A program made the position numbers and the translations under genes. From Tubulanus polymorphus (Eukaryota > Animalia > Nemertea): a stretch of 64,000 bases of DNA. The notes under the pieces were generated by a model. It had not been told where the DNA came from, made no database searches, and saw nothing but the letters and a program-made list of their open reading frames with translations. The stretch spans positions 8,588,451 through 8,652,450 of the forward strand of contig NC_134035.1 in NCBI RefSeq assembly GCF_964204645.1, in the 5' to 3' direction. Shown here piece by piece: positions 23,626 through 64,000 of the stretch. Position 1 is the stretch's first letter. Each line of letters begins with the position of its first letter.

Positions 23626-23781
23626 TACACCTGACGTTGATCTCTAGGGCGAGGTCGAAACGTAGTGTATTTTATATTTTAGACTGCTTGAATAGATAAA
23701 TTCTCGATTTTAAATTCTCTTAATTTGTACATAGTGGGTTTTAATCTTATTATCCGTTCACCACGTTTGAGCGTGGTTATC
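23626..23781 (+). mobile_element. Single-arm hammerhead-bearing element (same subfamily as the 31.2-kb copy)
   Basis: TACAC-CTGACGT-T-GATCTC-TAGGGC-GAGGTC-GAAA-CGTA-GTGTA at 23626-23669, with an A9-to-U core change. Its 3' tip recurs inverted at 21552-21583. Confidence 0.62.
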
Positions 23782-25477
23782 GTTCAATTAGCTCACGTGT
23801 ATAGCAAAGGACTTATGGTCCATGGCTACTTTGACGGCCAGCTACTTTATAACGACCGGCTGAACGCCATGTGTTTGTTGTCGAATCTTTCTTTTATATT
23901 CTTATGGACATAATCTTCGTGGCAAGTCCTGTTGGCTGCTTGGATCTTGGAGTAATCAGACAGAGAGTCTGATTACTCCAAGCTTAGATATAGTGCGGGA
24001 AACACTTCAAAGGCCGTGGTCTCGTCGTGGGATTAAATGAATATCCGAATAGGCTCAGGCCTGGTAAACTAAAAAAAAAAAACAGATGCAAAATCCACAC
24101 AGAAAATGTACCCTGACAAAATAACGTCAGCTAGAGATCGAGCGAGACTGTGACAGTTTTCGAGTAGGCTTTGCAAACTGTTTACTTTTACTCGATGGAG
24201 TGCGATCTCCTGCGTGGAAAACGCTACGTAATCGTCTCGAATGAATGCGATTCCTCGAGAAGACGTCGCCAGACGATATTTCCGGTGATTTTTCCACTCG
24301 AATTCATCCGTATTCAAGCGACGTTTCGGTGCCTGGATCGTTCGTTAAAACCGATCGGCGGCGAAGCTTCTGCGTATAGTATGTCTGGGGCAACTATTTA
24401 GTCAGAAAATTCTAATGTTCTCCACCGACGTCGGTCCGCTCCCCCCTCCCCCCCCCCCCTCCATGATGAAGTTAGTGCATACCTGCGCGAACGAGAGGTT
24501 TGTTTTTTTATTACCTATCAACCCCGGAGCACAGCTCCATCATGAAATGAAAGAGAGATTTACATTTAACCAATATGAAACTACTATTGTTTTGATTATA
24601 TCTACGTGGCCAGTGACTCCAAAATGATCCGCTAGGTTCGCTAATGGTTACGTGGTTTACCGCGCTTCAATGCCTGCCACAATTCAATTCGAATTGTTGT
24701 CATAAGTAAATAAATTTTCGGTGAAATCTATACCAAACATTTAGTGAGGAAGCGAATTTTATCTATCATATTGTCCAAACGTGTCATTTCCTGGTGAACT
24801 GACACAAATCGGTGACTTTTCGACCCCTCGTCGTTATCGCTGGCATAACGATTACAATCAGGTATCGCAGCATCCTAATGACGATCAGCAAAAAAAAACG
24901 ATTTTGTTTTCGTGACATTTTCTAATTGATAGCGGATGACTTCCTATTGACATTACGCGCGTGGTTTAATTGTAGCGTTTATAGACGATTCACGATTTCA
25001 TTGTTCTGCCCTAATGGCTTTCCGCGCGCGTTCTTTGATCTAGTTCAACGGGGGATGATATTCGATATCGCATCATCGTGCGCGCGCGCGTGCGCCGTTT
25101 TGCGATCTGTGTAACCGACGATGCGGCGTTAACAAGGTCGCGGAGGTGTCACGAATCGATAGCCGACGAAGCGTCGCGCGAAACAATTATCGAGAAAAGC
25201 TGACAAATTGATTACCGTCTGTCAATAATGATAGCTGGAAATAACAACGTCGACTGTTTGTTTACCGATGAGCAGAACTGATAGATAGCGATACGTGCCT
25301 CCTGACTTGGACGGATACAACACGTCATCGCTAAACGTATCAAAGTCGTGCATCAGAATATCAAAAAGTGTAAAAAGCTCAACGCATACGGTATCTTGAA
25401 ATACGAAAACAGGAGACGAAAATATGAAAACCAGCGTTTATCATAAGGGGACCTTTCTAGGGTTATTTGCGGTTCGT

Positions 25478-25670
25478 CTTGATTTGATTGATTTGATTTG
25501 AACACTTTATTTTTCAAATATAATTTACAGCATAGTGTACAAAGCATAATACAAAATACAGTAAATTAGACCTGGAGGGGCCTGTAGAAATAAAGGAATA
25601 GTTCGTATAAAACAGGTCCCTCAAAAGAGAAAAGTGACAAAGAAAAAAAGACAAATGCAATAAAGAAAAA
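25478..25670 (-). mobile_element. CR1-like 3' tail remnant
   Basis: (GATTT)n tail, then TTTATT, then a GAGGGGCCTGT..ACAGGTCCCTC hairpin. Comparable tails occur at 33005-33070 (homologous to 9025-9085), 33735, 34980 and 51195. Confidence 0.5.
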
Positions 25671-28142
25671 GCGCGTCTTAGCCTCTGCCACGCGTCTCCC
25701 TACTATTAATTTTCTATTCTAGCAAGCGCGTCATACCTTCCAATGGTGTATTTGTTCTCTTTTATCTTGGCCGGACTTGTTCGGCTAGTTCGCTCCGTCT
25801 ACTGCGGAATCGCTGCGCCACGAAGTAAATCATGTTTCGACGCGACGGCAGCCTTTAAAAGCATTGTCAAACTATCTATTTATCAACACAAATACATTAA
25901 TGGCAGCCTACTTATCCTAATGGTATAAGTATATCTCCATTGCATTATTTACGCATTATCTCGACGAGACTTCGCCGATTATTTCTCCGACAAGAGAAGA
26001 ATAAATGGCCCAGTGCGTAAATCTATTTGACAGCTTCCAAATCGGATAAGAAGGCGAATTTGTCTTAGGACTCGTGCTGAAAATGATGAATTAAGTAATG
26101 GGACATGATTATATCCGAATCTGACTCGAATAGAAGCGGAAATGCGGGCGACCCAGATACAGATATTTGCCGTTTAACATTTCACGTTGGCTGAGCTGAA
26201 TCGTTGAAAGTGAACAAATTTCGACCGAGTTCGTGACTTCTACCAAAAGCGAAACTAAGACCTTTTTCATCTCCTTATTTCATCATCAATCTGTCTCTTA
26301 GACCAAATGGATTTCATAACCGAAATTCGTTACCTATCCAGTTTGCAGAATTATGGCAACATTTATGAGGGACCTCTTCTTTCTAGGAACTATTTTGGGA
26401 TCTGACGCTACGCATCTTCAAGCTACTAAGCTAATTGTGGTCTGATGCCATACCCCCAGATACGAGATCATGGCACTATTTTCTATCAGACTGTTATGTA
26501 TTTTGACAGTTAGATTATTTCACTTTTCTCTGATGTAAGTACAGATTTTAAAAACCTGCGCCTTCAAGGACGAATATAGGGCTGTTAGACACGAGGTTCA
26601 TCATTTTTCCTTTTTTTCCGAGTAAAAAGTACACATTTTGAAACCTCCACGTGGCCGTTCGTCCATTAGTCCTAGGAGCGGTTTGTTCTGTACTGTATCC
26701 GTCGGCGATGCGATGACAGTTACTCCGTAATTGCTTACATATCGTTCGCATAGAGCACGAAGAACGTACAAAAATAACCTCACGAGAACTTAAAAAGGCA
26801 TTAGCTTTTCAAGCGTTTATTATTGGCCGTATCACATGCTCGCGGTCTCTTTTGAAGAATTACAAGACATTCGAGCGAACCGGAAGCAACACATGACATT
26901 CGACGTCAAGTCCGCATTCAACTGCATAGTGATACGTAGAAGATCGATGGCGGCGGCTATAATTGACATCGAATACAAACAGATCACGCTATAGATTCGT
27001 TTGATTATGTACGGCAAGCGCTCGTAAATAATTATTACATTTTCTAACGAACATATTCACCTATCGAAGCGCGGTAGACACGAAAAATGCATTACAGACA
27101 GGATATTGGATGCAGGAATAATCGAGCTTAAAATCGGCGACACTATTTATCTCAATTATGCCGCGTTCCGATCGAAAACTTTTCAACAGTTCGATATATT
27201 TTGATTAATGGACGATTGTGTGGAAGGCTGCTGCTGTCAATGATATAAAAAATGTATCGGAGTTTTATTATTTTCGGTGAAGAAGAGCGCGGTGGAATTA
27301 GCCGTAGTTTCGATGCTGCTATACGCTATCATAAGATCGCGTTCACTTCGTGAAGCTCATCGATTACAAAAGCGACGAAGCAAATCGTGTATATTCGTCC
27401 TCGAATACCAAACGACGCGTTGATTCGTATAGATTGATTGTTTCGAATCTGAAAATCTGAAGTGGGATTGCGAGGAGCGCCATAAGTGCCGAGGTATCGG
27501 CTGGTTGTGTTTTTTAAACGCGACGTAGAAGTAGATTGACTGTAAAAAAGGCGCGAGGTCCAGTCTGTCACGCAGTACTAGCGTGTATTATGTAACGTGT
27601 TATATTTCACCGATCACAGTTTCACGGGTGATCAACCATGTATATTATTGTGTATATAAACCTTTTCCTGCAATAAAGTGGGGTTCAGTTTTTCGTTTGT
27701 ATCTAGCTGTGTTGGAGTTATTTTTCTGCCTTTGGAGGATCTACAGTCCCAGGTCATTTTCCGTATGACACAGTCGTCAACATCCACCATCTCGACAACA
27801 ACAAAAAAAGGCTCGTCACGCCAAGCTTGACGTGGTAAATCCGTATAAAGCATGAACGTAGATCCTAATGGATGGTGTTCGCGGTAGGCGATTCCTATGT
27901 AATCGCTGTCGTAAATAGCCTCTAAATAACACCGACTTTTGAAGAACGATTGCCAACGCGCAAAGGCCATCATTTTTTGTATGGCTCGGCAGTTTTCTAT
28001 GTGGTGGTTCTAATGTTTTCGATCACTTCTGTCTTGGAGACGAATTCGGGGCCGTGGTTAATGATGATAGATGCTTTTATATAGAAAATCCCTCGCTTGG
28101 AAAAGAAATATGGACACGAAATATCTTCTTTCAGTTACGGGA

Positions 28143-28255
28143 ACGGATGAAGATGATGACTATTGGGATATTCGTAGTCGAAACGTCCATCGTATATAAA
28201 TCAAACTAAATCCTTCAGACTCTTTTTTTCTCAGGGTGGAAACCATCAATATCAC
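28143..28255 (+). mobile_element. Degenerate hammerhead-like remnant
   Basis: TGAAGA-TGAT-GACTAT..GTAGTC-GAAA-CGTC-CATC. The core C is missing. Stem II resembles the 39.5-kb copy. Confidence 0.4.
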
Positions 28256-30507: not shown

Positions 30508-30833
30508 CATCCTCGCTTGCCAGGGGTCCGGTATCGCTCCCCGAACTCGCTTCCACCAGCCTCCTGGCTTCGCGACGCGTAATTTCATCGATGGCACTTT
30601 AGCGCATGACGTCATTATATCAACTTGCGAAATACTTCCTTGTTCGCTAAAACGTTTGCTGATTGGTCCATTTCACTGGAAATCGAACAGAAGACTAAAT
30701 ATCGTTTGTTACAAGCACTGTGATTGGTCCGACTGGATTCTGGTCGGCTATTAACGATTCCAACGAGTCGCAAGGTCAAGCGGTTCGGGGAACGGCATTA
30801 GCTTAGGTGATTTCGATTCCCTTTACGAAGATG
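30508..30833. mobile_element. ~330-bp dispersed element starting CATCCTC (second subfamily), copy 2
   Basis: The first ~50 nt are identical to 661-712 and similarity continues to the end. Confidence 0.72.
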
Positions 30834-30934
30834 GGATTCTTCTAACGTAGTGTGTACATGACATTCATAATTGGTGACATTTTCAAGCAATTTCCGTCAC
30901 GAGAAAAATGTACGAAATCAAAGAGAATAAAAAT

Positions 30935-31268
30935 GAATTCAACTTATCAATAATTAGAAACAAAATGCACGAGGTTTAGAACTCGAGATCATCGTCACGT
31001 GTTGTTTAGATTGAAAAAAAAAAGATTATAAACTTAAGAATTGGATTTGGTTTGGTTCAATACACCTGAGGCCGGTTGCATAGTCATGGCTTAGACTTAA
31101 GACCAGTCAAAGACCAACTTAGTTCTATAGCTAATCTAACATAAGACGAGTCTTCAGATTTAAGACCACTTTTGGACTTAAGTCACGACTGTGCAACTGG
31201 CCCCTGACGATGATCTCTAGTTGAAAGTTTGAAACGTCGTGTATTCTAATTTCAATTATTGATGAATT
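30935..31268. mobile_element. Degenerate hammerhead-bearing fold-back element interrupted by a MITE
   Basis: The left arm (30935-31002) is the reverse complement of the right arm. Removing 31069-31206 restores AATACAC-CTGACGA-T-GATCTC...GAAA-CGTC-GTGTATT (7-bp stem I, GUC triplet, decayed stem II). Confidence 0.68.
31069..31203. mobile_element. 135-bp MITE with 3-bp CTG TSD (PIF/Harbinger-like)
   Basis: TIRs GGCCGGTTGCATAGTCATGGCTTA and TAAGTCACGACTGTGCAACTGGCC. CTG is duplicated at 31066-31068 and 31204-31206. Confidence 0.8.
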
Positions 31269-34200
31269 AAAATCGTTTTGAATTGTTTTGACTTCCGTGG
31301 GTTATAATCACAGCCCGATTACTGACAACCATAGGATCGTCCATTATTAATGTAGAAAAAAAGCTCACGCACAGTTCTTGTTGCAGAAACATCTTTATCT
31401 GTATTAGTTTCAAAGTGATTAATGAACAATGACAGGAACCACCTGAAGGTATATGCAATGTATCGATTTCAGATGAACTATTTGCGTATATTATTAAGCG
31501 TTCGTTTCTATATCGATGAGTTTCAATCTTAATGGCGTTAACTTCACTATTAGAACCTTAGCATCAGCGGAAAATATGCGAAGATTTCGTACGAAAATCT
31601 GAAAAAACCGTTAATTGCGAGCATCGTACGCACTGCCGATACCACCGCTAAGGACTGGGATGAAGCATTAACACTTGGGTTCGGATTTTAGAACTAAGCA
31701 TCGGCTATCGTAGCGAAGCCTCAGATAGGTAGTAGCATCCTACTTGTATACTGCGGCCCACGTTTGCATTGAAACGAACTTAATTTCGATCAGATACGAA
31801 AACTAACGCAATCTAGCGCGCTATTAATTAGTGGTACGGGTTCCTCGTTGAAATTGCGGTCTGTAAAACCGAGAGTGTATCGTATCGACGTCATTTTCTA
31901 GGGCGCTGAATTCGGAAATCGAAATACGCGCTATCGTGCTACCTGATGTGTTAAACAGCGTGATTTCCATCGGCTTGTTTATACGATATGTCGGATCACC
32001 AGTGTGCGACTTATTTGCCAATTGTAACGACCGCGAATATCGTGTCGTCGGCGACACGACGCCAAAAAGCGATTTCTCGTATCGCGAGATGCTTTTTACG
32101 ACCCGAAAACCTATTGCAAACGTAGTAAGTCGTCGTAACGGATCGATAAGATTACGTACGTGCGACGGATTTTTAGTTTTGTTTTATATCTTTATTTACG
32201 CCGCTCTTGAGCTGAAGGTGTTACTTAGTAGCCGATGATGTTGTCCGATTGCAGTAAATTTCCTCGTCAAATAGCTATCACTTATTTTGTAGCCCTCGTC
32301 ACGAAATGGTAAGCTCGGTCGTATCAGCGGCTAGACTATACATCTTCGGTGTGAACGACGTGGTTTGATCATCGCCGGGTGACTTTACTATAAACGTACC
32401 AGCCCGCCTTACTTGGCCCAGTTCCGTGCCCGTGTTTTGATCGATCAAGCATAGTCCGGTTAGTACTCCGTGTTATGATTTTGCCGCACCCATGGATTTG
32501 GAACCGTCGAAAGTTTTGTCGTTGTTCATAGATTGAAAATCGCAGCTGCTACAAAAACAAAAAGGGATCCACAACAGTCAAAACAAAAATGTTATTGATC
32601 TCCTAAGACATTACGGGCAGAGCGTAATCTATTACTTGTGTCTAGATGAATGTTAGATGAGTTATTTACGTGCAGTGGATATGAAGCGAATTCGTCTTTT
32701 TAATGCGTTCAATAGGGCAGATTTTGAACGTTACAAATTACGCAATTTTACAGACAATTCGCCAGGTCGATGAAACTTTATCGATGTAACACGACTGCAA
32801 ATCGCATAGATTTACAGGACGTGTCCCAGGGAACCAAACTGTTTAAGTGAGGCGTCAGGGAAGCCATTTGAATCAGGACCCACCGCCTGTGAGGGTAGAT
32901 ACCAGCTCCCCATGTTTGGGATAATAAGCATGCGTAGTATATCGATTAAGATCCTTGGACTTGGATCGAAAGTTGTGTACTTTCTAACTTTTTAAATCGA
33001 ACTTTACGATTACGATTACGATTACGATTTTATTTACACTCCAACCATTTCCATGGTATATGGAGGAAAACTATTAAACATTTATATACAAATATTTACA
33101 AAACAACAACTCAGTGATTGTCACGCCATCTGTCGGCGGTGTGGTTTCCCATAAAACCATTACGTACCGTGACGTGTATAACATTTAAACAACTAGGGAT
33201 TGTCTGGTGTGGTATCGAATAGGAAATGAATTAATTGCTATTCGCGTCTTGTTTCCTGTGTTCATTCAAGATGCGATGGAAACCTATTTACACTACGAAC
33301 ACGACTTGTAACAACATTGAACAGTGAGACATCTTAACCCTTGAACGTCGTCCATGTTGGGCTGGATTGGATAAAACTGCATGAGTTAAAAACCGTTACA
33401 ATAATGTCGTTATACAGTCGACATCAGTATTGACGTTTCGAATTATCGATGTATCCAAATAAAAAATATACATTTATCGATCCTAAACATTATATAATTC
33501 ATATTATATCATTTATTGTCGACACAATACGGCATCTTATGGCATGTATATTAACAGGGCTGCAATAAGTGGGGCCGGGGTGGGTTCACCCAGCACTGGC
33601 AGTGGTTGTCTACACCAGTGATCTCCGTCGCTCTAACGATCCTAGTGTATCCAACTGTGGTACATCAGACACTAAGATTCTTGGTGAAGGGGTGGGGGCG
33701 TAGTTGCCCCGAGGAACTTTGGAAAAGCGCCCTTTATAATAATAATAATCTTTATTTACATTGAAATTATAACATAATATAACACCCAGTTTTATACATG
33801 ATTTGATAGATATATAAATATGTTTTTTGCACTATGTCACTGCCCTTTTTGGGTTTATCTGCCTCCGACTAAGAATATTATATGTGTTACATTTCAAGGT
33901 GTCAATAGATTTTCAAGTTAGTTTTCTTGTTTATAGAGTGTTTCATCGACGCTTATTAAGCCGTACATGTCACATGTACAACGACGATGACTGTTTATCG
34001 CTGTACCGAGTGGCGGATGCGAAGCGCAGAAACTAGTAAGAAACAACGCCGTTATACGGCTGCTGCGCCTTGTCATCGGGGATGATTGCTATCCGTCCGT
34101 TCTGTTCGACGTCGATAAGAAGAGACCTTTTCAATTGCGCGGTAGTGAAACACGCAGACGTCATTCTGTCATCCGAGGAGCATATAAGAAACTATAATTA

Positions 34201-35159: not shown

Positions 35160-35405
35160 CATCTAACAATCAATCCCTCTGCTAGTCGTCCCTCGCGTTC
35201 ATCTAGTCTAAGCCGGACATAGAGCCTACGCGTACTCAGCCCCAGTACTATGGGATATGTTACCTATTCCTATTAAATCTAGTCCTTCAATCGATTTTTT
35301 TTTAAATCCCATCTCAAAATCCATGTTTATCGAAAATTTTAAATTGAGCATATTTTGTATGGATTTTAGGCTGAATAAATTGATATTGTTATTGATCATT
35401 GTTAT
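35160..35405 (+). mobile_element. Retroposon (LINE/SINE) 3' end; second copy at 45698-45998
   Basis: ATCTAACAATCAATCCCT..CATAGAGCCT..TGAGCATATTTT..ATGGATTTT..AATAAATT plus a TTA/TTG tail, shared with 45698-45998. Confidence 0.65.
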
Positions 35406-38454: not shown

Positions 38455-39467
38455 GTTCCACGTCGAAAGTGGCATTTTTCACGTAAACTACTTAAATCTA
38501 TTATCTTGATGATTTGTTTGTCGAGTAATTGAGACATAAATAAATTCGTCGGGTACGTACGTTTTATTCGAAAGTGTGATAATAATGGTCTTGATGTTGA
38601 ATAAAGTTTTTTTTTTCTTTTAAAAAACCGTTCGTTGCTTCGATTTCTGGGTACGATCCGGCCGAATAGACGGGGAAGGGAGGGTAGGAAAAATCATCGA
38701 TAAGAATGAACAATGCCCGTGGACAATCGGCTTTATGTAACATCTAATTTTAAGGCTGCACACCATAGTTCATAAGTTATTGCGATTTTAACGATGCTCA
38801 AAAATGAGGTTAATATAACCGAAAATTGGAAAGCACCGGCGTCACCTTGATAGCCGAAATGCAACACTCCCACCGTTGTCAGAGTGACAACGCCGAGCGT
38901 GCGAAGGCCCGAGATGTTTTCTTTCCAACGCGGTACCGGGAAAGTCTGCACAGCTTACCGATTGTATCAATCGCATAATTACCAAGTTTTTCATCTCCCA
39001 TACTAGCCTACAACCCTATCCCTGCTATCTGATTGGGTTGTAACAAGGTAGGTAGCCATTGCGTATATGAGTTCATTTTTCTGGCCCCGGCCACGGGTTA
39101 TTCGTGACCCAAGAAACTAACAACGATTTTCCAGCGAGCTTCATCAACTCGTAGCTGGAGGTCTTCGATTTGTTACTATCCAATAGTTAAGGTCTTTTTT
39201 ATGCCTGGCTCATGGTTTTCATAGTGAGTTCGAGTTAATTGAACAGTAAAATAGTGTTCAATTCATTCATTTGTAACGCATGACTGACCTACTGACCTAA
39301 TTTTCCACAAGCTGGCAAACTAGTCGAACCTGGCCGCTCAAACTGCGTAAACATGCCAAACGGATATCTTACAGTCGTTTTAATGCCCAAACATTGAACT
39401 GTGGTGTCGAGAGAATCCCACAATGATTACGAAAAACAGTCCGAAAATGTTACTTTGAGCTAGTAGT

Positions 39468-39511
39468 TTATGCAACGTTTCGACTATCCTAATAGTCATC
39501 TTCAGGAATAA
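39468..39511 (-). ncRNA. Minimal type I hammerhead ribozyme motif (left arm of fold-back element)
   Basis: Minus strand reads TTATTC-CTGAAGA-T-GACTAT-TAGG-ATAGTC-GAAA-CGTT-GCATAA: perfect 6-bp stem II and one stem I mismatch. Confidence 0.75.
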
Positions 39512-39531
39512 TGAGGAAATCTTCAGGAACA

Positions 39532-39577
39532 TTATTCCTGAAGATGACTATTAGGATATAGACGAAACGTTGAATAA
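39532..39577 (+). ncRNA. Minimal type I hammerhead ribozyme motif (right arm of fold-back element)
   Basis: TTATTC-CTGAAGA-T-GACTAT..ATAGAC-GAAA-CGTT-GAATAA: 6-bp stem I, conserved core, stem II with one mismatch, GUU cleavage triplet. Confidence 0.75.
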
Positions 39578-39978
39578 ACTACTAGCTCAAAGTAACATTT
39601 TCGGACTGTTTTTCGTAATTATTGTGGGATTCTCTCTACATCGCTTCAACATGGATATAGTGTTTTATCAATCGTGACTGAACAGTGGTGATTGTGTTAG
39701 AATTAATTTTCAACTGAAAAATGATTGCACCACTAGATCCCCAAGCCCTAAAGGTTTTTTTTAATCTCTCAGAAAATGGTTCAGATGTCGATTATGGACC
39801 TGAGATTATCTTCAATAACGCCGAGATGCGTTAGCACCTGTTGGTCAGTTTGAAGAAAACGACGACTGTAAGACAATATTCATGTATAAATTAAACTTAA
39901 TCTATTCGATATGAAAAAAAAGTCGCTAGGTTTAAGCCAGCACATTCAATGCCTAATTAGTCAAAAAGACGGAAATCT

Positions 39979-40071
39979 CAGGATCCAGTTTGACAGTTGT
40001 GAGTTAGAGTTAACTGAGTTAAAATTAGTTCATTTTCAATTCTTAACTCACAACTGTGGAACTGGGTCCTG
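39979..40071. mobile_element. Short MITE; second copy at 48987-49091
   Basis: CAGGATCCAGTT..CAGTTGTGAGTTA / TAACTCACAACTGTGGAACTGGGTCCTG. Shares the core TTAGTTCATTTTCAATT with 48987-49091. Confidence 0.7.
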
Positions 40072-40123
40072 ATGTTTACTGGCAAAAAAACTCCCGTCAA
40101 CTAAACGCAAGTTGGACGTTCAA

Positions 40124-43100
40124 CTAATCGATAGATAGTTTTATTACATTAACTAACAACAGGATTGCTATTAACACGGCAGGTGACTCCTTGCTGTAAC
40201 CGGCGTTCGCGCTCAGCATATGTTTCATCAGCGAGTAAGCAGTTTCGGGTACGTCCCTCGGTATCTGAAAACGAATAGAAAATTTTGCTGTACATTTTTT
40301 TGGCAAATCAATTTCGAATGGTTTAAGAGTAGAGCGCTCCGCGAAGATTATCGGGAAATCACCTTGTGACTAGAGAAATAATACGCGAATGCGAAAGACT
40401 GCGTCAATGGCGAAAAGAAACGACCGTTGAACATCGTCCATTGAATAGCTTATTGCCACACTGGACTGAGTGTGCAGATACGTACATACGCTGTGGGTTT
40501 GCCGCACGAAACTTGCGGCGCCAATCAGATTATCTGTTGTATAATCGCTGAAGCAAATTCTGCTCAATATATATCTTGCGACAATCCGGGCTTAAAGAAA
40601 ACGTTATTTCTGATTGGCTTATAATGACATCATCTAAGCTGCGTATGTACCTGTGGACTCAGTCTAGTCAGGTAGGGTTTCGGGCTGTGGCAGTCTCAAT
40701 GTGATCAGGTTCAAAACCCGACCGAGGGAGGATGTAAACTAATGAAAGGGATGTAATCAAACCAGCTGAGTCGCAAACTGCTTAGACGTACATCTTGTGC
40801 GACGAAACGCGCATAAATCATGATAGAAAATGATAGAGAATACCCGGTACGTACCATGTGCCCCGATCCAACGATCCAAAAGAAATCGAAATTCTGATAT
40901 CGTTTTTGATAGGCGACCGGGTTCCATTCGTCGTCCCGTCTGTACAGCGATTTACGTTCGGCCTCTCTAAAACCCAGTTGACCGGCCCACTCCATGTTAT
41001 AAACCCATCTCTCCGTACCTGAAATATCGATGCGAAATCTATGAAAACGGGTGCCTTTCTATCATAACCATTGGCGAAACACTTTGCCCCTGTTTTGACG
41101 ATATATAAAGTATCCCATAATCAAAAAAACACTAGAAGAACTTTTCCAGTTATCGTGGGATAAATGAAGAAATCCCACACTTCGAATTAAATCATACGAT
41201 AGGATTTATTATTTTGAAACCACAACGTTTCGGCTATTGACTAACATTCCACCTGATGACGGCTGTCAGTCAACAACCGAAACGTTGTTGGTTTCAAAAT
41301 AATAAATTCTATTCTGTAATTTAATTCGAAGTGTGGGATTTCTTCATTAATCTACAGTGTACACGAATTATAGTGTTTATTCGACGACTATCGTGGGATG
41401 TTGTACTCCAAGGTGGGATATCCCTCGGATTTTCATCTTACACTGTGATGTTGCGCATCTGCTCGACTTCGCATGGTGTGCCGAGGGGCGCGTTGCGAAT
41501 TTTCTAGTAGCCAAACTATCCATGTATAACCGCATTTCAATCGGGCGTTTGCTAAATTCGCTCGGTGTGTGTCACCTCTATCGCTCAAATCCGGCGAAAT
41601 AAATACATCATGAATCATGTGATCGTTTGATCGACGAATCAGTCTTCGCAACGAATTCGCCGGAAAAAAAATGTATCAATCTCGACTTCCGGAATACGAC
41701 CGCCGCAGGTGAATTATACGGCGAATGATTCGCCAAAGATATATTCGCCCAATCTACACGTTTTAGTGAGAGGTGGTCACAATCGGAAGAAAAACTATAT
41801 GAAAATTGTATCAACGTTTCGACTCACTGGAATCGACTTTTTAAACAGCGTCTTTCTTCTGATTGCTATTTTCACTCACGCAGTTATGGTCAGTTGCCTA
41901 TCTATGAAACCGCATCCTCCCTCGGCAAGGATTCGAACCTGATGGCATCGCTACACTCAGACACGGCACGAGCCCCTGCCGCACTAGACCACACGAAAAC
42001 TTGCGGCACCCATCAGATTGCTCGTTGTATGATCGCTGAGGTAAATTTCACGGAAGAACTATAAATGGGAAAACCCGGGCTAAAATAAAACGGGATATCT
42101 GATTGGCTGATAATGACATCATCTAAGCTGCGCGTGTAGCGGCGCAATCGGTCTAGTGCGGCAGGGTTTCGTACCGTGGCAATCTCGATGCCATCAGGTT
42201 CGAATCCATGCCGGGGAGGATGATGAAGCCGCTCATTGAACTGGAATTGATACTTGATACTTCGGCTCAGTTGAAAGTTTGTATACCGCAGATACTGGGT
42301 TCACAGGCGGTTGTTAAAGAAATAAATAAACCACCCGTTAAAAACCATTTGCATTTTTTATTTTACTGGTTTGCAGAGCGCAATCAAAACATCGGCTACA
42401 GTCACGGTTAGCGCGATGCGACTTCCAATGAATTTTAGTAGAAAATTCCTGCTACCCAAACTGAGAAAACCTGTAGAGCATGTCGGTGTAGCAATAAGTC
42501 TTTCAAAACTTTCCCTTTTTTCTTATTGAATTTGAAATACGAACATTTTGTGTCCAAAGCCATTCGATATGAATACGATTAGCCGTATAATACTATTAAT
42601 GAATTATCGATCCCCTTTATGTATTTTTGATTATACTTTATACCACTATTATTGGAATATAGACTGAACATGTCCGATAAATCATACATTTTTTCGCCTT
42701 GTTCTGGACTTCTGTGGGATTTATTACGTTCTTTACTTACCGATAGTGTTAACGATGATGTCCAACTGCCCGACCATAACCGTTACGTTCACACCTTTTT
42801 TCAATAAATACTGGACTGAAAAAATGAATTACATGCGTATTATGTATATACGGTAGGCATCATTTGAAACGAGAGAAAATGGGTATATCTAAGAAATAAG
42901 TGCCTCATTGGGTAAAATGGTACGTGGTCTATATATGGAAATATACCTTCTTTAACGGCTGGTCTCAGGCCATCTTGTTTGAACGAGATAAATGTCTGCT
43001 TTTTGGCACCTGTGGAATAATTTCCATGAATATCAAATATTGAAACAATAAGTATTGGAACGAATATGCTAATTACAACGTAACGACGCTATAATGCCGT

Positions 43101-43259: not shown

Positions 43260-43293
<34 letters not shown>

Positions 43294-46200: not shown

Positions 46201-49200
46201 GGTTTAATTCTAGAATCGATTCAAGATAAATTGAATCAACGATGGAAATAAAAGAGCTAAACTTTCGTGCGCAACAGGGCTCAGTGTTTATTCATTCGGC
46301 AATTGCTGTTAGTTAAGCCCAACGCACACGGCACTGAAAAAACGTTTTTTCCTCGTAAAAAAGTTTTTTTCGGTGCCGTGTGCGTTGGAGCCAAAACACA
46401 AAACACCGAACTGAAAAACGTTTTTCACGAGCAAAAAACGTGTTTTCTGTTTCGGCGAAACAAATTTTTTGCCGTGTGCGTTGGGCTAAGAAACAGCCGC
46501 GACATCGTGCCCGCAATTATCAACTTTTCAATTCATGAATTCCAAGTCTTCAATATTGTTGGATTTCGCCTAAATTTCAGTAACATGTCAACTACGAACA
46601 TGTATTCTAATAATGAATACGATTTTGTGGGTTAAATATTTGATCCGTTACATAAAGTATACATCTAGTATTCTCACCGGGGTTGTATAAGATGCGGGTG
46701 GCAGACGCCAATTAGCACCGGGGAAAAATTTTAAATTTTCTGTCCGTTGCTAGCTCGCAATACTATACTATAACACTGGATTTCGTGAAATCGATTGAGA
46801 TGTCAAAATAATTTTCTCAATAATGTAATGAACACTGACAGAGGTTTCTACCGTATAATTACCACCTTATAAGATCAATCTTGTTATCTTGTGTGATATG
46901 ATATGCTTAGTTCTTGAATTATTAGGAGGTGAAATAATATCTATATACGAAGGTTTTGATTGAAAAGTAACTGATTTCATTTTTAGTAACACCATCCAGT
47001 ACGGCAGCTTGGGCCAAATTCGGTTTTCGTATCTAGTCGACTAGTGGTCGGAACTAATAACCGAATGCGCTTGATTTTCGAACTATTTTCGGAATATAGT
47101 TCCGACTAACGGACATTCAGTTTCGTTTAGTTCAACTATAGTCGACTAACTCAGATAACCGAAGGTGGCCCATTCGGTCAGGACTTCATTTCGAAATTAC
47201 AAATCCGAAATTAATCCTACCTGAAATTCCCGTAATTCTCCATTGTTAAACAGGTAAATGAGAAACTTGTGTAGATCGTTCGTTGCGACGGCATCGGTTG
47301 ACGGCGGCGGGACGTTGCCCGTAACGTAGCTGAAACCCACCCCAGCCGGACTGTCGACAAACAATACGTTCGCTTGTTTCACCTACGCGCGAAGAAGTTA
47401 AAAAAACGAATTTCTTGCAAATGAATACAGTCAATCCTACTGGAAATCGATAATGCAAGCATTCTTATAATCGACTAGATCTACTAACTTAATGAACTAA
47501 TATACAAATCGAACAATTACTGACTTAATGACGGATAATTTGTATGTCGATTAGAAGTTTGAGATTTCCGAATTTCGAGTTAGAGATTTTAGATATTTCT
47601 TTGTCTAAGTTTGTTGGCGTGCTTTCAGCTTGTTAACTAGGCGTTGTTTCACATTACGGCTGTACGTCCAACGCGAATCCGACTCAAAATCAACCCGCAT
47701 TTCGGCACCGAATCTGGCTATATAGCGATTCGAGCGATCGAACAATTTACGATGAATTATGACGGGTGGCCTTTGAAATATTGTGACACGAAAGACATAC
47801 AGCGCTGAATTGTGAACTCGGATTTAGTGATTAACATACTTTTAGCGCTATTAGTAGTATGCCTATAATGATAATTGTTGAACTGTATGATTGACAGTGA
47901 TTCTAACGAAAACCGACGTGAACTTTTTTCTACTCCTAAATAACCGTTTTTTTTTCATGAGGTATTGATTTGCCTCGCATTTTTTTCGGAAAGCAAAATA
48001 TTTCGTTATCGAAATACATGTCGAAACATGGTGCATACCCAAGTTGTCGGTCTGGCGTTTCCATCGACGTCCAGTGGTCCGATTTCCATTCGGTCCCCCA
48101 CAGCGGTGGCCGCTTGACCCGGACCGCCCTATAAGAAATGAGCGAAGAAAATCAAATTGAATTATGCTCTGGAAAGGACCTAGGAATTTCAGTTTCCTCA
48201 GAAGGTTTTTTTCTTTCATAAATGTGTTGTTTTGACGATAATTACTGAATCAAGATTTGACGCTTGAGTAAGAACATTTCGAAATAAACTGATTCTGGCT
48301 GTAAACCAATATCTATGGAATTTGGTCCGGCTTTAATAATTATGCTCCAAAACTTTGGATCTCACATGCGCATTCTAAACATAGGTCATTCGATTTGCAC
48401 GAATTCAAAGTTCACTTCAAATTTCCGATTCTATGCATAGGCTTACTATTAGTCTATTTGACCTGGAGTGCCGAACTTAAAGCGACAACGATCCTTCCAT
48501 TTTACAAATGACATTTCATGTTCCTATACTTTCCATTATTGATATAACTAGTATAGTTTACCTGAATCCACATGATTAGAGGTCGATTTTTATATCCATC
48601 CGAATGAGTACTTCGGTACAGCCTCCAGAATAGCGATACACCATTTCTGACATCCACGTAACCCCACTCATTCAAACCATCTTCGCTTTTGGCTTCGGGG
48701 CAAAAAAAACGATAGAAAAGCCTATTTCATATAGTCCGTATACTTTTAACGTTGTGTCGTTTATATTTCATAATTTTCGATAATAGATTTCGCTATAATT
48801 CACTCTCGTTTATTAGCGTAAAACGGGCGTGTACAAGCCGTTGATAAATCACTTGGGAGGTATTGGGAAATAAGGTGTGGTGGCAGGTGTTCTACGATGT
48901 TTCGACAGTAGCTATAATTCAAACGAATCCGTTAAGCTCATTTAATGCAACACCGTCAATCGATGGGAAACTAGCTGTCAAAAGTCTGGATCCGGTTCCA
49001 CTTGTGAGTTAGGGTTAACCCTAAGTTAGTTCATTTTCAATTAGTTAACTCAGAGTCAAATCGTAACACAGAACTGTGGAACTGGATCCAGGCAGTTTGG
49101 TGACACGGCATGAGATTGACTATGCTGAAAAAAAACAGATTCGACGCTCCAGTGGTGCGCTAGTATATAGTTATAGTGTATCCAGATCAAAATCTTCTAT

Positions 49201-52965: not shown

Positions 52966-53483
52966 ATTCCAAAATCAAAAACATGATGAATTGATTGTTT
53001 TATATGTTATGTTGCTCGGGTTTTCTGCATGAATTAACAACTTCATAAATATCAAATCGATGCTACTGCGTTATTTGCATGTTTAGAACGATGAACATTC
53101 GCATAAAGCTTTTGAAAAGAGTTAGTCGGTTCGAATCGTCGTTAAAAACTGCGTCCGATATCAGTTACCAATTTAACATCAGTGAAATGAAGTATTTGCG
53201 TTGTAAAACGCTCGAAAAAATAATGATATGTCGGAAAATATTTCATCTATTTGACGCTTGATGAGTGATATTTGCACAAACGACGCGCTGCGTAGATTCA
53301 GCCAGGGACGACCGAAGAAAAAAAACGAACGAATATCGCGCGGTATTGGCTGTTGGATACACCTGCAACACCGCATTAAGTATTATCTGCTATATACTAC
53401 GCCGGTGAATTCTATCACCGGTTTTTGTCATAAATGTCAAAAAGAAACCGTCCTTATCAACACCGAACTCGCGCGCTGCCGTT

Positions 53484-56400
53484 ATGGTGGATCCGTGGTA
53501 CAGCAGGATGCGCAGAAACGCCATGGAATACGCCGAAGGGTCGAATTTTCACGGGTTGAAGTTCGTATTCTATGCGTCGTCTACATTTGCAAGGTTCGTA
53601 TATATATACGTATAACATATGGTGACTTGTACTAACAGTGCGCGTGACGCGAGCGGATCCCGGGAACTGACGAAGGGCGGGGTTAAGGTCAAAAAATGCC
53701 ATTTTCTATTTACGCAAAAAAGGGTAGATAAAAAACCAAAAGGTTAAGAAATTTTTCAGCTTTCCTCAAGATTAAATCAATAAACTGTTTGAAATCAATG
53801 AGTTATTTAAGATGATTTTAAACAATTTCAAATACCGCAATGATGTTTTTTATGTCATACAAAATTCAAACCTAGCAATAACAGAACTTGTAAATGGGTA
53901 CGAAATAATACCTCTTCTTCGTTATCTGGTAGTCAACATTTTGTACTTCTTAAATTCGAATAGGGCACACTCTTTCAAAAGGGGTAGTGGGTGTTCTAAA
54001 GTTCTAACGCGTATCGAGGCTTCTTTCAGCCAGTACAAATAAGGCTCAATATAGAAAACTGAATTTGTTTAAAGGTTGTAGATGGTTATTTATATCATCG
54101 AGAATAGAAAAATTCGTTCAACGTAGGCCTAAATTTTGAACCTGAAAAATTACCTTCTTTTAGGCAAAATCATTCCTAGATATTTTCAAGGGTAATTTTT
54201 TATCAATCTATACGACAAAACTCCCCCATAGATTAGAAGGGAGTGGTTTTCAACTGCGCAGGATTCCCTGCTCGTCAGACCAAAAACTCTTGCTTGATTA
54301 TAAGTTCAAAGTAGGCCTAAATTTCGAACCTTTTCTTTTAAGCTAAATCTTTCCTTATAGATATTTTGAAGGATAATATTCTATCAATCTAAAGGCTAAA
54401 AGTCCCTCATAGATTAGAAGGGAGTGGATTTCTTAAACAAATACGCAGGATTCACTGCTCGTCAGACAAAATCTGCCTCGAATATAATATGTCCCTCTTC
54501 ATATCATTATAAATGATAATCAATGCCCGTTTGATATCGATATTACTAAATTCAATGATAATGGCTCTTATTCAACAGCCGAAGTGTTTTCGTTTCATTT
54601 TGATTCAAAAGATTATATCGCATAAAGAATTTACTGTGGAACTTTTTCATTTATCTAGAGTTGACAACAGATTGTAGACTGTTTCATTGGACAACTAACT
54701 AAATCCGATATGAAAGAATCTTATATGTATATACGGAGCTAGATGCATATGACCGACTAAATACCTATCCACGCCATTCCCCAATCCATTTCCCATTGAT
54801 TTAAAGCGCATGTCTTGTTTACAGGTGTATGTGGCTGTTCGTTTTTCTGCTGGCCACGACCGGTTTCGTCTATCAAGTTCAGGATCGTATCGGGTACTAT
54901 CTCGGCCTGCCGATCCGAGTCAATATCGAAGTCGAAGAAGCCAGCGAACTGAAGTTTCCAGCGGTGACGATCTGCAACACGAACAGCTTCGTGTAGGTAT
55001 TTTCATACAAGCGTTTATCAGTTGACGAGGAGGTGAGATGTTTGTCACCTCATATTTGCTAAAAGCATTCATTAAAGTAATCACTGGCGGCCAATATTTT
55101 TAAAATGCTAAGCGAGAACAGCGAGGAACTGGATCCCGTTTATCTTTCGTTGAGTCATGCATAACAATTCTCCTGCACTGGTTAGCAAACAACCTATGAC
55201 GTCACACATGCGAGAACTCCTGTTCTGTTTTTTTCGATAATTCAACGAACGAAGCTTCGGCTTTAAACGTGCCCGGGGAATAACGGAAAAATGCATTAGG
55301 TTTATTCTTTTCATTCATTGTTCACAAAAGGAAATTTGCGCTGAACAATCATAAAAAAAGGAAATTCGCGCTGAACATTTATAAATGCATTCAAGTACAA
55401 TGATAGATGCGGTACAAAAGAATTACGATATACCGAGTTATATTTGGTCGCGGGAGCATCAATATGCAATCGTTAGGGACGTGGGTTATGCTAGTAAAAA
55501 TGTTATATAAAGATGTAAAGATTAGTTCTTTATCATACACGGGTACGGATTCTAACGAATTTACACAAATCAATTAGTGTTCTTTTCTGTTTTATATTAC
55601 AAAGCGTGTTAGGATTATGGGTTTGTCCAAAATTTACGGGGATTTGTTTGTTTCTATCGGTCGTGAAAAGGTTGCATTCTACGAGGATATGTTTCTCATC
55701 ACCTAGGCATCGTGCGTTGCGCTTTTCACATAGTCTTTCTTCTTTTGGGTCATTATTTTTTCTTACTGTTTATTAACCTGGTTGTTTTCAAGGTTTGTAG
55801 TTTATATCATATATTGTCTAAGTCGTTAAAGAGGTTAACGGTGTGGTTCGATATCGAATTACGTAAGAATCACGGTGTGGTTCGATTACTTTCTTGGATC
55901 TCGCGTTTTTAACACCATCTTTGAATGTCTTCCTCATCAAGATTTCACCGGCTTCACCGGATCTCCTAATAGACAGGTCGTCTCTACTAAAAACAATGCA
56001 TCCTAAATCGTGCGCGAACGTCTCGATCCATAAGTTATAGTTTATTTGTTTTTGATTTTTTACAGGATTCGATTTTCTATTAGTCGATACGGTTACTATG
56101 GCGGCCGATTCGCCCCATTGAAAAAAATGAGGCCCGGCCTTTCTAGCGGAGAATTGTATTTTTGATGCGCAGAATTTCTTTTATCTCGCGTCCAATTATC
56201 ATCCATTATTCATATACGTTATACTTAAAGGGAATAAAGAATAGAGACGAATCGGATCAATCATATATTGATTGTTTCTATCATTTGCCCAATTTGAAGG
56301 GAAAGCTTAAAAGCAGCTGCATTTTTGGAATACAGCCCTAGGCCCAATTATCACTATGTATGGAGGTTCAAGTTTCCTGGGTACTCGAAGCCTAATTCCG

Positions 56401-62400: not shown

Positions 62401-64000
62401 AATACCTTTAAGGCGTTGTTATCTAAGCAACTCGGCAAACTCGCGTTAGACGGCCGAACCTGAACCTGTGATTGAAAAGGCCGCCATTTCGTTTTTCAAT
62501 CGATCGACGAACATGCTTGTCGTGGGCGCCATCTAGAGACGCGAACCAACTCGCCTGCACGGACGAGTTCTCGCGTTGGATACTCGTCTAACTAAATGTG
62601 CCGAGTTGGGTACTCGAGTATGACGAGTTGGTTCAATAAATTGACAATTTGACGGCGACGTAAGCGAGTTGCTAAAATATAAAAAACGCCTTACAGATCA
62701 ACGAGAGTATTCCCACAACAGATTCAGTCAAAAAGGAAAACTTCTATACAAGAATGATATCTACATTTCGAGCAACGTTTCGGCTAAATACTATTTTCAT
62801 TCTACTATTCTCATCCTATTCTCAGTACGCCTGATGATGGCTAATAGCGTTTAGCCGAAACGTTGCTCGAAATGTAGACATCATTTTGATATAGAAGTTT
62901 TCATTTTCGGCTGAATTTATCGTGGGATCTCTCTCGCTTTTTTCATCATACGGATACTGTGACTATAGTGAACTGATATTAATCTCAGTGTAGAGTTAAC
63001 AAATAAAAACCCTCAGTAGATATGTAGAAAACTTTATTCTCTAACAGTTTCGGTGTTACTTCTAAACCCCATCATCAGAAAATGATAATATAACGCTTTA
63101 TTATATCATAATATGTTATATTATTGTATTTTATCATTATTATTTATATTACTATATTATTTATGCTATTTTGATATATATAATATTATCATATTATTGT
63201 TGATATTGTATCATTTTAGTTTCTCTGATGACGGGGTTTAGAAGTGACCCCGAAACTGTTAGAAAATAAAAGTTTTCTACATATCTACTGTGGGTTTCTA
63301 TTTGTTAATCGATATTGTGTATCATCTCGTCTCAACTTTAAGATCAGTTTCCAATTTCAAAATGCGTAGGTATTTCTATCTAACATTTCACATTTCGTTT
63401 GATTTTATTTTTTCGCGTAGACGCAATTTTGTCGTGCTAAACGTATACTATACGACGATGAGCTACGAACAAATCATCAAATCGCAAGCCTACAATTTAC
63501 TGGGGCTGATATGTGAGTAATGGTATTATTTTCTATAAAGAAAGCGAATAATTTGATATCGATAGTAAAAGCAATGTTGCTTATTTTCTCGCGAAGCGCA
63601 GCCGTTTAGGTCAATATTGCTCTGCTGTCCGTAAGAGTAAAATTATTCATTCAAGAAAAGAACAATAAGAATAAGAATTTGATCGCTAAGAAATGAATTG
63701 CAGTTGAAAGTATTAAGTTTAACACCTCATTTTCTTCTGGTAAATTCTTGGCAATTAAAAACACTTCGTGATAAATATTTTCATCATAAAAGTTGCTGAC
63801 CTATTCAATTAAGTTATATACTCCAAATCAATATTATCTGATAACACCCTCATTTCAGGTGATATAGGTGGTTCTGCCGGGTTGTATTTGGGCGCGTCCC
63901 TTCTTACGATACTAGAACTGTTCTACTTCGTCGGAACTAAAGCCTCCACGCGCGTAGAAGTACGCGCCAACCGGGCCGTCGAAATGTCCTGCGAAAACGA
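53484..64000 (+). CDS. DEG/ENaC (ASIC-like) amiloride-sensitive sodium channel subunit with a very large extracellular insertion; 3' end runs off the window
   Basis: Phase-consistent exons: 53484-53593 (SNFHGL, HG motif), 54825-54992 (TM1, FPAVTICN), 56973-57128, 59719-59837 (DYGVCFTFN), 59960-60141 (GLTLLLNVEQ, GIKFLVH), 60263-60455 (PYGMC..CRC thumb), 60788-62228 (CPQDC plus insert), 63421-63512 (NFVVLNVYY), 63859-64000 (DIGGSAGLYLGAS, TM2 filter). The start ATG is the first in frame after a stop at 53406. Confidence 0.9.
54123..54467. repeat. Two diverged ~185-bp direct repeats in DEG/ENaC intron 1
   Basis: GTAGGCCTAAATTT..CATAGATTAGAAGGGAGTGG..CTGCTCGTCAGAC occurs twice (54123 and 54311). 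Confidence 0.8.
57320..57645 (-). mobile_element. Decayed L2-type LINE 3' end
   Basis: The minus strand encodes TFGGGSFSITAVSIWNS (L2 ORF2 C-terminal motif). It is followed by TATGCGCTTTAC..GCGCTT and an AATAAAG(ATA)n tail. Confidence 0.6.
57645..57960. repeat. Unclassified dispersed repeat; other copies at about 9760-9935, 10880-10960, 22505-22740, 50255-50470
   Basis: Shared blocks GGGATTGACCCTGTTA, GATTGGTAGATTTCGTTT and GATTTTGAAATCGGAAATC. Confidence 0.7.
58975..59218. mobile_element. Degenerate copy of the CATCCTC MITE family
   Basis: GGATTCGAACC...AGCCAATCAG...CCATCAGGTTCGAATCC...GGAAGGAT. Confidence 0.65.
60788..62228 (+). CDS. 1441-nt internal exon of the DEG/ENaC gene (end of thumb plus helical insertion)
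   Basis: TAG acceptor ending at 60787 and GTAAGT donor at 62229. The frame is open throughout and contains ORF 60844-62232. Phases match both flanking exons. Confidence 0.88.
62702..62970 (+). mobile_element. Hammerhead-bearing fold-back element in a DEG/ENaC intron
   Basis: Inverted arms span 62702-62936. Core GC-CTGATGA-T-GGCTAA-TAGCGT-TTAGCC-GAAA-CGTT-GC at 62829-62866: perfect stem II, stem I only 2 bp. Confidence 0.7.
62996..63308. mobile_element. Hammerhead-bearing fold-back element in a DEG/ENaC intron, motif on both arms
   Basis: Arms at about 62996-63090 and 63210-63308 surround an AT-rich spacer. The + strand motif is TTTCT-CTGATGA-C-GGGGT..ACCCC-GAAA-CTGTT-AGAAA at 63220-63265. 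A - strand copy lies at about 63038-63082. Confidence 0.72.

Follow-up and report, generated by a model that had tools for sequence, protein, structure and literature searches.

Pairs of minimal hammerhead motifs on opposite strands, 100–700 bp apart, have been attributed to truncated Penelope-like elements (PLEs; Cervera and de la Peña, 2014, PMC4209133), which also carry such motifs singly or in tandem, about 3 kb apart. The published motifs are built on a CUGANGA/GAAA core; a bulged base separates position 9 from 10.1, the G10.1-C11.1 pair is conserved, helix II has 6 bp and helix III is reduced to a palindrome (ACGU or ACUGU), and each genome contains many covarying families of them. Their cleavage is poor and occurs only in dimers or in the presence of protein (PMC4209133, PMC11167929). 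All these traits of sequence and arrangement recur in the genome of the nemertean Tubulanus polymorphus, the source of the 64,000-nt window analysed here, in which the spacing of opposite-strand hammerheads goes down to ~50 bp and the limits of the arms, the tail, the target site duplication (TSD) and the junction can be described at the level of the base.

A one-sided tail and inverted 5′-truncated copies are a hallmark of PLEs (Craig et al., 2021, PMC8557442). Canonical EN+ elements form partial tandems, giving rise to pLTRs that contain the hammerhead, with an adjacent inverted 5′-truncated copy and a tail of 30–40 bp at a single end (PMC8557442; Evgen'ev and Arkhipova, 2005). The genome analysed here shares this architecture; the window contains only the shortest products, lacking any coding part, and includes one class in which both arms end at the same point, 7–9 nt 5′ of the CUGA box. 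Frangieh et al. (2024, PMC11167929) showed in vitro that the protein of the Anolis Poseidon PLE cuts and extends both strands, starting at two adjacent internal sites, which set the limits of the tail. As in our sequences, the Anolis hammerhead lies ~100 nt upstream of these reverse transcription (RT) start sites and a small AC-rich hairpin occurs at the start site, and two-strand cutting and extension would yield inverted pairs. Conversely, the Anolis ORF starts inside the hammerhead whereas here the ATG comes after the tail, and the combination of one tailed and one tail-less arm seen here was not reported for Anolis in vitro (PMC11167929). Lastly, metazoan non-LTR retrozymes (PMC7229834; bioRxiv 10.64898/2026.07.22.740005) are likewise short, non-coding, AT-rich, hammerhead-bearing and tied to PLEs, but their units follow one another head-to-tail, have hammerheads of the canonical type I and yield circular RNA, while the copies described here lie inverted or singly and have hammerheads of the minimal kind.

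Hammerhead loci in the window

The seven loci named in the original prediction, which was made from the sequence alone, do contain minimal type-I hammerhead motifs (CUGANGA, a single bulged base, helix II of 5–6 bp and GAAA-CG-UH), and two further relics were found at 21552 and 54556. The positions given there were correct, but right ends had been placed too early, the tails reaching ~62975 and ~63335. Its five inverted duplications are also real (30914–31295, 39405–39677, 41159–41390, 62702–62936 and 62996–63308) and, as it had noted, no ORF is attached locally, the window being devoid of RT or GIY-YIG coding sequences. The loci are listed below by window position and assigned to fold-back families A, B, C, C′ and D; bit scores and E values are those of a covariance model (see below).

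21552–21589, minus strand: piece of the tail region from the 3′ module of a family-A PLE, 94.7 % identical to 23744–23781 over 38 nt (blastn); absent from the original prediction.
23620–23790, plus strand: family-A single arm (monomer), 55.7 bits, no inverted partner found; hammerhead at 23623–23672 (helix I UACAC/GUGUA, helix II GAUCUC/GAGGUC, U at position 9), GTGGG motif near 23735, tail reaching ~23785 and folding with a CCACG/CGTGG hairpin.
28142–28195, plus strand: old family-B-like hammerhead relic, 18.6 bits, E = 0.013, 83 % identical to the family-B hammerhead over 35 nt (blastn); core CU changed to AA, helix II GACUA/UAGUC retained.
30914–31295, left arm on the minus strand: decayed family-A-like inverted dimer, its inverted repeats 70 nt long at 71 % complementarity and 18 nt long at 94 %; right-arm hammerhead with helix I AAUACAC/GUGUAUU, 20.2 bits at 31196–31246, in which an unrelated stretch of ~137 bp bounded by terminal inverted repeats (~31064–31200) has been inserted behind CUGA.
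39405–39677: family-B inverted dimer; left arm 39405–39513 (minus), variable centre ~39514–39529, right arm 39530–39640 (plus), hammerhead 39530–39579, 37-nt tail 39641–39677, flanking TSD of 10–12 bp at 39395–39406 and 39679–39690.
41159–41390: family-C inverted dimer; left arm on the minus strand, cut off inside the hammerhead; right arm from ~41245, hammerhead 41245–41294, tail of ~40 nt ending at 41390, TSD of 11–12 bp (TATCGTGGGAT).
54556–54699, plus strand: family-C-like single arm, 71 % identity over 147 nt (blastn), E = 0.035; 5′ truncation within the CUGAUGA box, tail present, candidate TSD of ~7–9 bp; absent from the original prediction.
62700–62975: C′ inverted dimer, akin to the PLEs of the 817-aa family; left arm 62700–62795 (minus), truncated in helix II; right arm from ~62800, hammerhead 62823–62872, tail to ~62975; 77 % identity with the autonomous pLTR of genomic copy L039.
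62996–63335: family-D inverted dimer; left arm 62996–63086 (minus), unique AT-rich spacer 63087–63203, right arm from 63204, hammerhead 63217–63268 (helix I UUUCU/AGAAA, helix II GGGGUU/GACCCC, ACUGU at helix III), tail 63311–63335, 95.8 % identical to the C′ tail.

Contigs from two sequencing runs that behave like DNA break at 39533 and 39677, showing only the repeat boundaries; a further run, possibly of RNA, contained nothing on 39200–41600. A BLAST search of the genome with the relic at 28143 gave no second match, and genomic homology to the family-A arm runs from 23627 to ~23785.

A plain hammerhead sequence pattern occurred 12 times in the window, versus 2.4 times in dinucleotide shuffles. 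A strict descriptor with both helices paired retrieved one intact copy only (63225–63260; none in 200 shuffles), and detection of the remaining copies needed a relaxed pattern and a purpose-built covariance model. This model (R1), made from six PLE-linked hammerheads and scanned over the whole window with filters off, gave 10 matches with E<0.05, all of them within the predicted loci or at 54549–54596, and no further match better than E=0.3. The Rfam hammerhead models found no copy at the gathering threshold or at E<=10, either in the whole window or in two stretches of 110–120 bases, which we take to be a consequence of the 1-bp helix III; the 2014 study of minimal hammerheads relied on a descriptor and not on Rfam models (PMC4209133). 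Other Rfam matches, at 39975–40073 and 46316–46394, were discarded as sub-threshold likeness to miRNA hairpin families, on unrelated palindromic repeats.

The autonomous copies of families B, C′ and F match the hammerhead core (C3 U4 G5 A6 N7 G8 A9 / G12 A13 A14 / U16.1 H17) exactly, as does the window copy at 63225, which is the only intact hammerhead among the ~11 copies of the window. Several of the others have core mutations, such as U at position 9 (23631) or AA for C3-U4 (28143), and the copy at 39538 has an A/A mismatch within helix II. The bulged base after A9 and the G10.1-C11.1 pair are present in the hammerhead alignment, and the helix III palindrome is ACGU or ACUGU across all families. 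In 45 distinct copies, whose alignment had been fitted to the covariance model, 90.7 % of the helix cells were paired, versus 67.5 % after shuffling and 30–45 % when slid; both-sided changes occurred at 11 of the 12 helix pairs, with G10.1-C11.1 being GC in 44 of the 45. The covariation score was 0.563, as against 0.18 for shuffled alignments (none of 500 shuffles reached the observed value) and ~0.07 for slid ones. Both the covariance model and this score thus bear out the proposed hammerhead consensus and the covariation of its stems between families.

Relationship to autonomous Penelope-like elements

Hammerheads that are the same base for base occur elsewhere in the genome at the start of intact ORFs of 817–841 aa coding for RT and GIY-YIG domains, which links the arms to Penelope coding sequences; as stated in the original prediction, the motifs are hammerheads of the Penelope type. 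The genomic partners (L042, L039 and L041) have a single ORF with RVT_1 followed by a C-terminal GIY-YIG domain, both above the Pfam cut-offs, and these elements are arranged in tandem with a period of ~2856 bp. When fold-back arms are aligned to full-length PLEs, homology begins at helix I of the hammerhead and ceases at the 3′ end of the PLE. Each arm is the PLE stretch from just 5′ of helix I through the 3′ end, and in each family it comprises the hammerhead, some 60 nt of spacer, the motif GTGGGAT and the tail.

In the autonomous elements, this segment is preceded by a TATA box and, 31 nt downstream, by a CA(T/G)T initiator-like site situated 7 nt before the hammerhead; after the ~60 nt spacer and GTGGGAT there is a tail of 35–40 nt, with a small AC/GU hairpin, and then the ATG of the ORF. 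Both autonomous families have the first T of the TATA box at position −31 relative to CATT or CAGT. A pyrimidine run and an AG just upstream of the shared arm boundary, also found in both PLE families, could alternatively make this boundary a 3′ splice site, but the TATA box at −31 with its CA(T/G)T initiator, whose A would be the first transcribed base, is the preferred prediction. The right arm at 62800 reaches ~19 nt upstream of the predicted start site. The best explanation for GTGGGAT and the tail is that they mark, respectively, the first and the second 3′ end used in the PLE terminal module. Finally, several positions distinguish the family-B fold-backs of the window from the intact PLEs that were sampled, among which no source copy was recognised.

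Insertion signature and alternative origins

The tail (37 nt in family B, 40 nt in family C) was at one end only in all 17 aligned copies, on either side, and none of the ~40 family-B genomic loci aligned had a tail at both ends; nevertheless, BLAST-ranked samples are biased to tailed copies, so that tail-less dimers may be under-counted. The TSD varied from 8 to 13 bp in the 14 readable copies. Among the best 150 genomic hammerhead matches, adjacent pairs within 4 kb were head-to-head in 32 cases, tail-to-tail in 1 and tandem in 10 (hand count). Distances between head-to-head hammerheads range between 46 bp and 3.8 kb, no sequence class standing apart, and 7 of the 32 pairs fall at 46–65 bp. 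Family-A second arms stop short of the tail and vary at their 5′ ends. Both arms of any one copy have private variants in common, with identities of 0.95–0.96 within a copy versus 0.90–0.91 between copies. The centres of family-B fold-backs are different in every copy, 5–19 nt long and in some cases with short templated duplications. In family C the junction is the same in most sampled copies, which fits either a recurrent microhomology join or the copying of entire fold-backs.

Taken together, these features probably make each locus the insertion of a Penelope-like retrotransposon that holds only its terminal module. The fold-backs are the shortest form of the usual head-to-head inverted-dimer insertion of PLEs, made of 5′-truncated copies, and hence belong to a known kind. 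The PLE insertion signature, with its variable TSDs, tail at one end, head-to-head pairs and variable junction, shows that they are not MITEs, retrozymes or a new class. The proposal of a separate, diverse class of retro-hairpins does not hold, because each family is the end segment of an autonomous PLE family from the same genome.

The same signature agrees with the original view that the elements were inserted by reverse transcription and not by a DNA transposase, as indicated by the variable TSDs and the one-sided tail; the fixed-length TSDs and symmetric inverted-repeat ends that would have spoken for a transposase were not found in the copies examined. MITEs, derived by deletion from a DNA transposon with terminal inverted repeats and resembling hammerheads only incidentally, would also be short, AT-rich, palindromic, numerous and flanked by TSDs. 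However, single arms and arms of unequal length exist, the entire arm is collinear with a PLE pLTR and helices I and II covary, and the variability of the TSDs and the inequality of the ends rule out an origin that we consider the most improbable of all. Hardly more credible is that the copies are metazoan non-LTR retrozymes, which produce small circular RNAs through double hammerhead cleavage: they share the type I of the hammerheads and the coexistence with PLEs, but retrozymes are head-to-tail repeats of 170–400 nt, each with a canonical type-I hammerhead, an arrangement that window copies do not have. These are inverted or single and never head-to-tail, leaving one sense hammerhead per transcript, and their motifs are minimal, with no loop-loop contacts and a helix III of 1 bp; orientation and hammerhead type thus rule out this origin.

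The suggestion that the fold-backs propagate themselves as a non-autonomous lineage akin to SINEs or retrozymes, being transcribed in their own right and mobilised in trans by PLE proteins, deserves more weight, even if we regard it as unlikely. It would account for their very high numbers (1527, 597 and 1292 first-look candidates for families B, C and A, respectively, those of family B being full-length), for variants that family-B fold-backs have in common and that are missing from the sampled intact PLEs, and for the single junction common to family-C copies; moreover, according to a 2026 preprint, the retrozymes of vertebrates descend from the pLTRs of PLEs (10.64898/2026.07.22.740005). 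Yet the arms come to an end where the start is predicted, leaving out the TATA box, the family-B junction was made anew in each copy, and private variants common to both arms of a copy are those expected from a single-arm template. The continuous range of head-to-head spacings, with no distinct sequence class, and the folding of the predicted fold-back transcript into one long hairpin (−111 to −171 kcal/mol) also argue against self-propagation.

Proposed origin and significance

In the PLE origin that we favour, a short RNA starting at the pLTR promoter would be reverse-transcribed from internal start sites, as described for the Anolis PLE; both this template RNA and its start site are predictions. 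Both strands of a staggered GIY-YIG cut would prime synthesis, one of them beginning at the downstream site and therefore carrying the tail and the other beginning at the upstream site, and the two cDNAs would join at their 5′-template ends. The product would be a fold-back of 230–340 bp without a promoter, probably dead on arrival. The hammerhead would be a passenger of the PLE terminal module, and the covarying stems would result from the coexistence of several PLE families. Within a fold-back it would be sequestered in the long hairpin, locked with its antisense copy in a predicted duplex of ~110 bp, which makes it doubtful that each fold-back contains a working ribozyme.

A more speculative version, to which we assign little probability, sees the fold-backs as in vivo footprints of symmetric two-strand integration by a dimeric PLE particle with two promoter-proximal RNAs of ~110–146 nt, joined via the palindromic helix III; the main job of the motif in PLEs would then be RNA pairing for integration and not cleavage. 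If so, the rule of one tailed arm would reflect a different RT start site for each DNA strand.

Annotation pipelines should treat these elements as fragments of PLEs when masking, and not as MITEs or a new ribozyme class. Given a rough figure of ~50,000 first-look hammerhead candidates in 268 Mb, they represent a sizeable share of the repeats of this genome, in which Penelope-like elements are active. The fold-backs open no new question about ribozymes. Their significance lies in their base-level anatomy, with a common inner arm boundary, one tail per insertion, a remade junction and private variants common to both arms, which provides evidence from natural insertions that matches the internal RT initiation and both-strand priming described in vitro; the anatomy of the arms is thus a simple genomic read-out with which to test the in vitro picture of PLEs.

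Hammerhead motifs in the window

The hammerhead layout of the original prediction was found at all seven of its loci by reading the sequence: the 5′ strand of helix I, CTGANGA, one additional base, a looped helix II, GAAAC(G or TG)T with one non-G base after it, and the 3′ strand of helix I. Beyond this lie 45–70 nt rich in A and T, then a GTGGG(A/T) motif and further sequence. On primary sequence alone the pattern is matched 12 times in the window versus 2.4 times in dinucleotide shuffles, and a pattern demanding both helices occurs once versus 0 in 200 shuffles; the motif is present above chance level. A covariance model built on six hammerheads picked for their linkage to Penelope-like elements (PLEs), and run on the window with filters off, gave 10 matches at E<0.05, all within these loci except 54549–54596. 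The inverted duplication described for five loci was likewise confirmed, and locus 23620–23790 (family A) does contain a hammerhead arm, but it is a single arm and not one of an inverted pair. The sole intact motif is 63217–63268; all other copies in the window are disabled by one or more changes in core or helices. Rfam recognised none of the window copies, nor the intact genomic hammerheads, even with searches of ~110 bases.

Additional features of the window
54549–54596: model match beyond the seven loci (covariance model, E<0.05)
21552–21589: 38-nt fragment (blastn with arm references)
31064–31200: ~137-bp element with terminal inverted repeats (GGCCGGTTGCATAGTC... / ...GACTGTGCAACTGGCC), from sequence
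39975–40073: near-perfect ~100-nt hairpin, sub-threshold Rfam matches to several miRNA families
~40577–40657: second abundant repeat
46306–46399: GC-richer hairpin, symmetric sub-threshold mir-9261 matches on both strands

The hairpin at 39975–40073 (best Rfam match 43.4 bits, gathering score 80) was rejected as a miRNA gene, because its summed contig depth, ~1000–4000x that of neighbouring unique DNA, indicates a very abundant palindromic repeat. That at 46306–46399 (mir-9261 match 34.7 bits, gathering score 86) is probably also a palindromic repeat.

Covariation was assessed on 104 model hits (window plus 60 fetched loci), which yielded 45 distinct sequences in an alignment fitted to the covariance model and thus biased toward the structure. 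Paired cells amounted to 90.7%, versus 67.5% when shuffled and 30–45% with the partner column slid; changes on both sides were seen in 11 of 12 helix pairs, the core-adjacent pair was G-C in 44 of 45 sequences, and the covariation score (0.563 versus 0.18 shuffled) was reached by 0 of 500 shuffles. Despite the model-fitted alignment, the slide control agrees, as do the sequences themselves in six or seven families, with UUAUUC/GAAUAA, CGC/GCG, CCAC/GUGG, UUUCU/AGAAA, GUUA/UAAC and UACAC/GUGUA in helix I, and GACUAU/AUAGUC, GGCUAA/UUAGCC, GGCUGU/ACAGCC, GGGGUU/GACCCC and GGGUGG/CCACCC in helix II. The 45 sequences of this model-fitted alignment bear out the claim that pairing is kept while primary sequence differs. 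Loop II opens with UAG in five of six families of the hammerhead alignment, despite their differing helix II, which could reflect a loop contact or, in one reading frame, a stop codon.

Fold-backs and autonomous Penelope-like elements

The arms had been described as having no attached reverse transcriptase (RT) or GIY-YIG frame; the fold-back hammerheads are, base for base, those beside genomic RT plus GIY-YIG ORFs. A GIY-YIG domain search of the genome (268 Mb) gave 150 scored hits, many within open frames of 817–841 aa, three of which contain RVT_1 and then a C-terminal GIY-YIG domain, by domain order the canonical EN+ PLE architecture. Hammerheads of the window families lie immediately upstream of these ORFs and recur downstream with a period of ~2856 bp: the 833–841 aa PLE family bears the family-B motif of 39530, and the 817 aa family the GGCUAA/UUAGCC motif of 62831. 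For the older window families, no source copy was located. When aligned with full-length PLEs, fold-back arms start with the 5′ helix I strand (CATTATTC) and end at the exact point where the full-length PLE meets flanking DNA; PLE sequence 5′ of the arm start, TATA box included, is absent from the fold-backs.

The RT-EN ORF of either autonomous family has its first in-frame ATG 2–3 nt past the tail end (L042:2326–2334, L039:7688–7695), which places the start codon of one tandem unit directly against the 3′ end of the preceding one, whereas the ORF of the Anolis PLE begins inside the hammerhead. Separately, G000:C6:19813894–20106100 contains twelve perfect family-B hammerhead matches on one strand, spaced 11–48 kb, suggesting a large segmental tandem duplication containing a PLE copy.

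First-look searches identified 1527 full-length candidates genome-wide for the 272-bp fold-back 39407–39678 (82–88% identity), 597 candidates for the element at 41150 and 1292 for that at 23600. Among the 150 best genomic model hits, neighbours within 4 kb, tallied by hand, formed 32 head-to-head versus 1 tail-to-tail pairs, plus 10 same-strand pairs ~2856 bp apart. Head-to-head spacing ranged from 46 bp to 3.8 kb, and the seven pairs at 46–65 bp are minimal fold-backs, the short end of a continuum; these are young, since their hammerheads are identical to those of intact elements. Most family-A copies consist of one arm plus tail, a form that also occurs in family C; where family A has a second, inverted arm, it stops before the tail and its inner end is variable.

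Insertion layout and probable origin of the fold-backs

Nine family-B and eight family-C copies share the order target-site duplication (TSD), reverse arm, centre, forward arm, extension, TSD. The extension, or tail (37 nt in family B, 40 nt in family C), is on one end only in 17/17 copies, on either side, and no two-tailed loci appeared in the family-B genome search, each locus matching the tail in a single orientation. TSDs are 8–13 bp, varying between copies. This is exactly the description of PLE insertions by Craig et al. (PMC8557442): 5′-truncated copies that neighbour a truncated copy in inverted orientation, and a tail of 30–40 bp often at one end only. The tails contain a small hairpin with compensatory changes between families (AACACG/UGUGUU, UACACG/UGUGUA, CCACG/CGUGG), a likeness, suggestive only, to the AC-rich stem-loop of the Anolis PLE. 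In the latter, two internal RT start sites in that stem-loop, ~110 nt downstream of the hammerhead, delimit the tail, and both strands of the DNA are cleaved and extended by the protein (Frangieh et al., PMC11167929). At 62975–62996, inverted dimers of two different PLE families are only ~20 bp apart, which suggests a preferred target or insertion beside an existing copy.

Variable TSD length and unequal ends exclude a MITE identity for the fold-backs. The element at 31064–31200, inserted within the CUGA box of a family-A hammerhead with a 4–5 bp (C)CTGA duplication, does look, from its sequence, like a true MITE landed in an older PLE relic. A 2026 preprint derives vertebrate retrozymes from PLE terminal repeats (pLTRs; 10.64898/2026.07.22.740005). 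The window elements have neither head-to-tail repeats nor canonical hammerheads and were rejected as retrozymes.

The family-B centre is unique to every copy (5–19 nt, sometimes with short arm-start duplications), and both arms of a copy share private variants (identity 0.96 within versus 0.90 between copies; family C is similar). Copying of whole fold-backs does not fit these remade centres and shared variants, which fit two cDNAs per insertion, both templated by the same kind of single-arm RNA and fused at their inner ends. Both autonomous families have a TATA box whose first T is at −31 relative to the A of CATT or CAGT; that A precedes CUGA by 7 nt, and the common inner arm end coincides with this predicted transcription start site. 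Transcripts initiated in the pLTR would be reverse transcribed from nearby internal start sites into cDNAs of 110–146 nt; one DNA strand would prime at the downstream site, its cDNA bearing the tail, and the other at the upstream site, giving a fold-back product devoid of promoter. Family-C copies, with mostly one common junction, are a weak point for the joining of cDNAs, as is the arm at 62800, extending ~19 nt beyond the predicted start, for the start site.

Ribozyme activity and relation to known elements

Read-through RNA from three fold-back loci is predicted to form one long hairpin (−170.6, −111.2 and −138.7 kcal/mol) in which the hammerhead pairs with its own antisense copy. Minimal hammerheads of PLEs have been reported to cleave weakly, requiring dimerisation or the element's protein (PMC4209133, PMC11167929); cleavage was dispensable for insertion in vitro (PMC11167929). 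Given this predicted fold and the weak cleavage, the window hammerheads are best seen as passengers, mostly decayed relics.

All the features that made these elements striking are already present in PLE minimal hammerheads, which have an extra base after A9, a G10.1-C11.1 pair, a palindromic helix III and many covarying families, opposite-strand pairs 100–700 bp apart having been attributed to truncated PLEs (Cervera and de la Peña 2014, PMC4209133). The observation was real and well read, but the proposed separate class of retro-hairpins is a known kind of element, its arms being terminal segments of genomic PLEs. The modest novelty lies in describing, at base level, the minimal inverted dimer and the regularities it shows.
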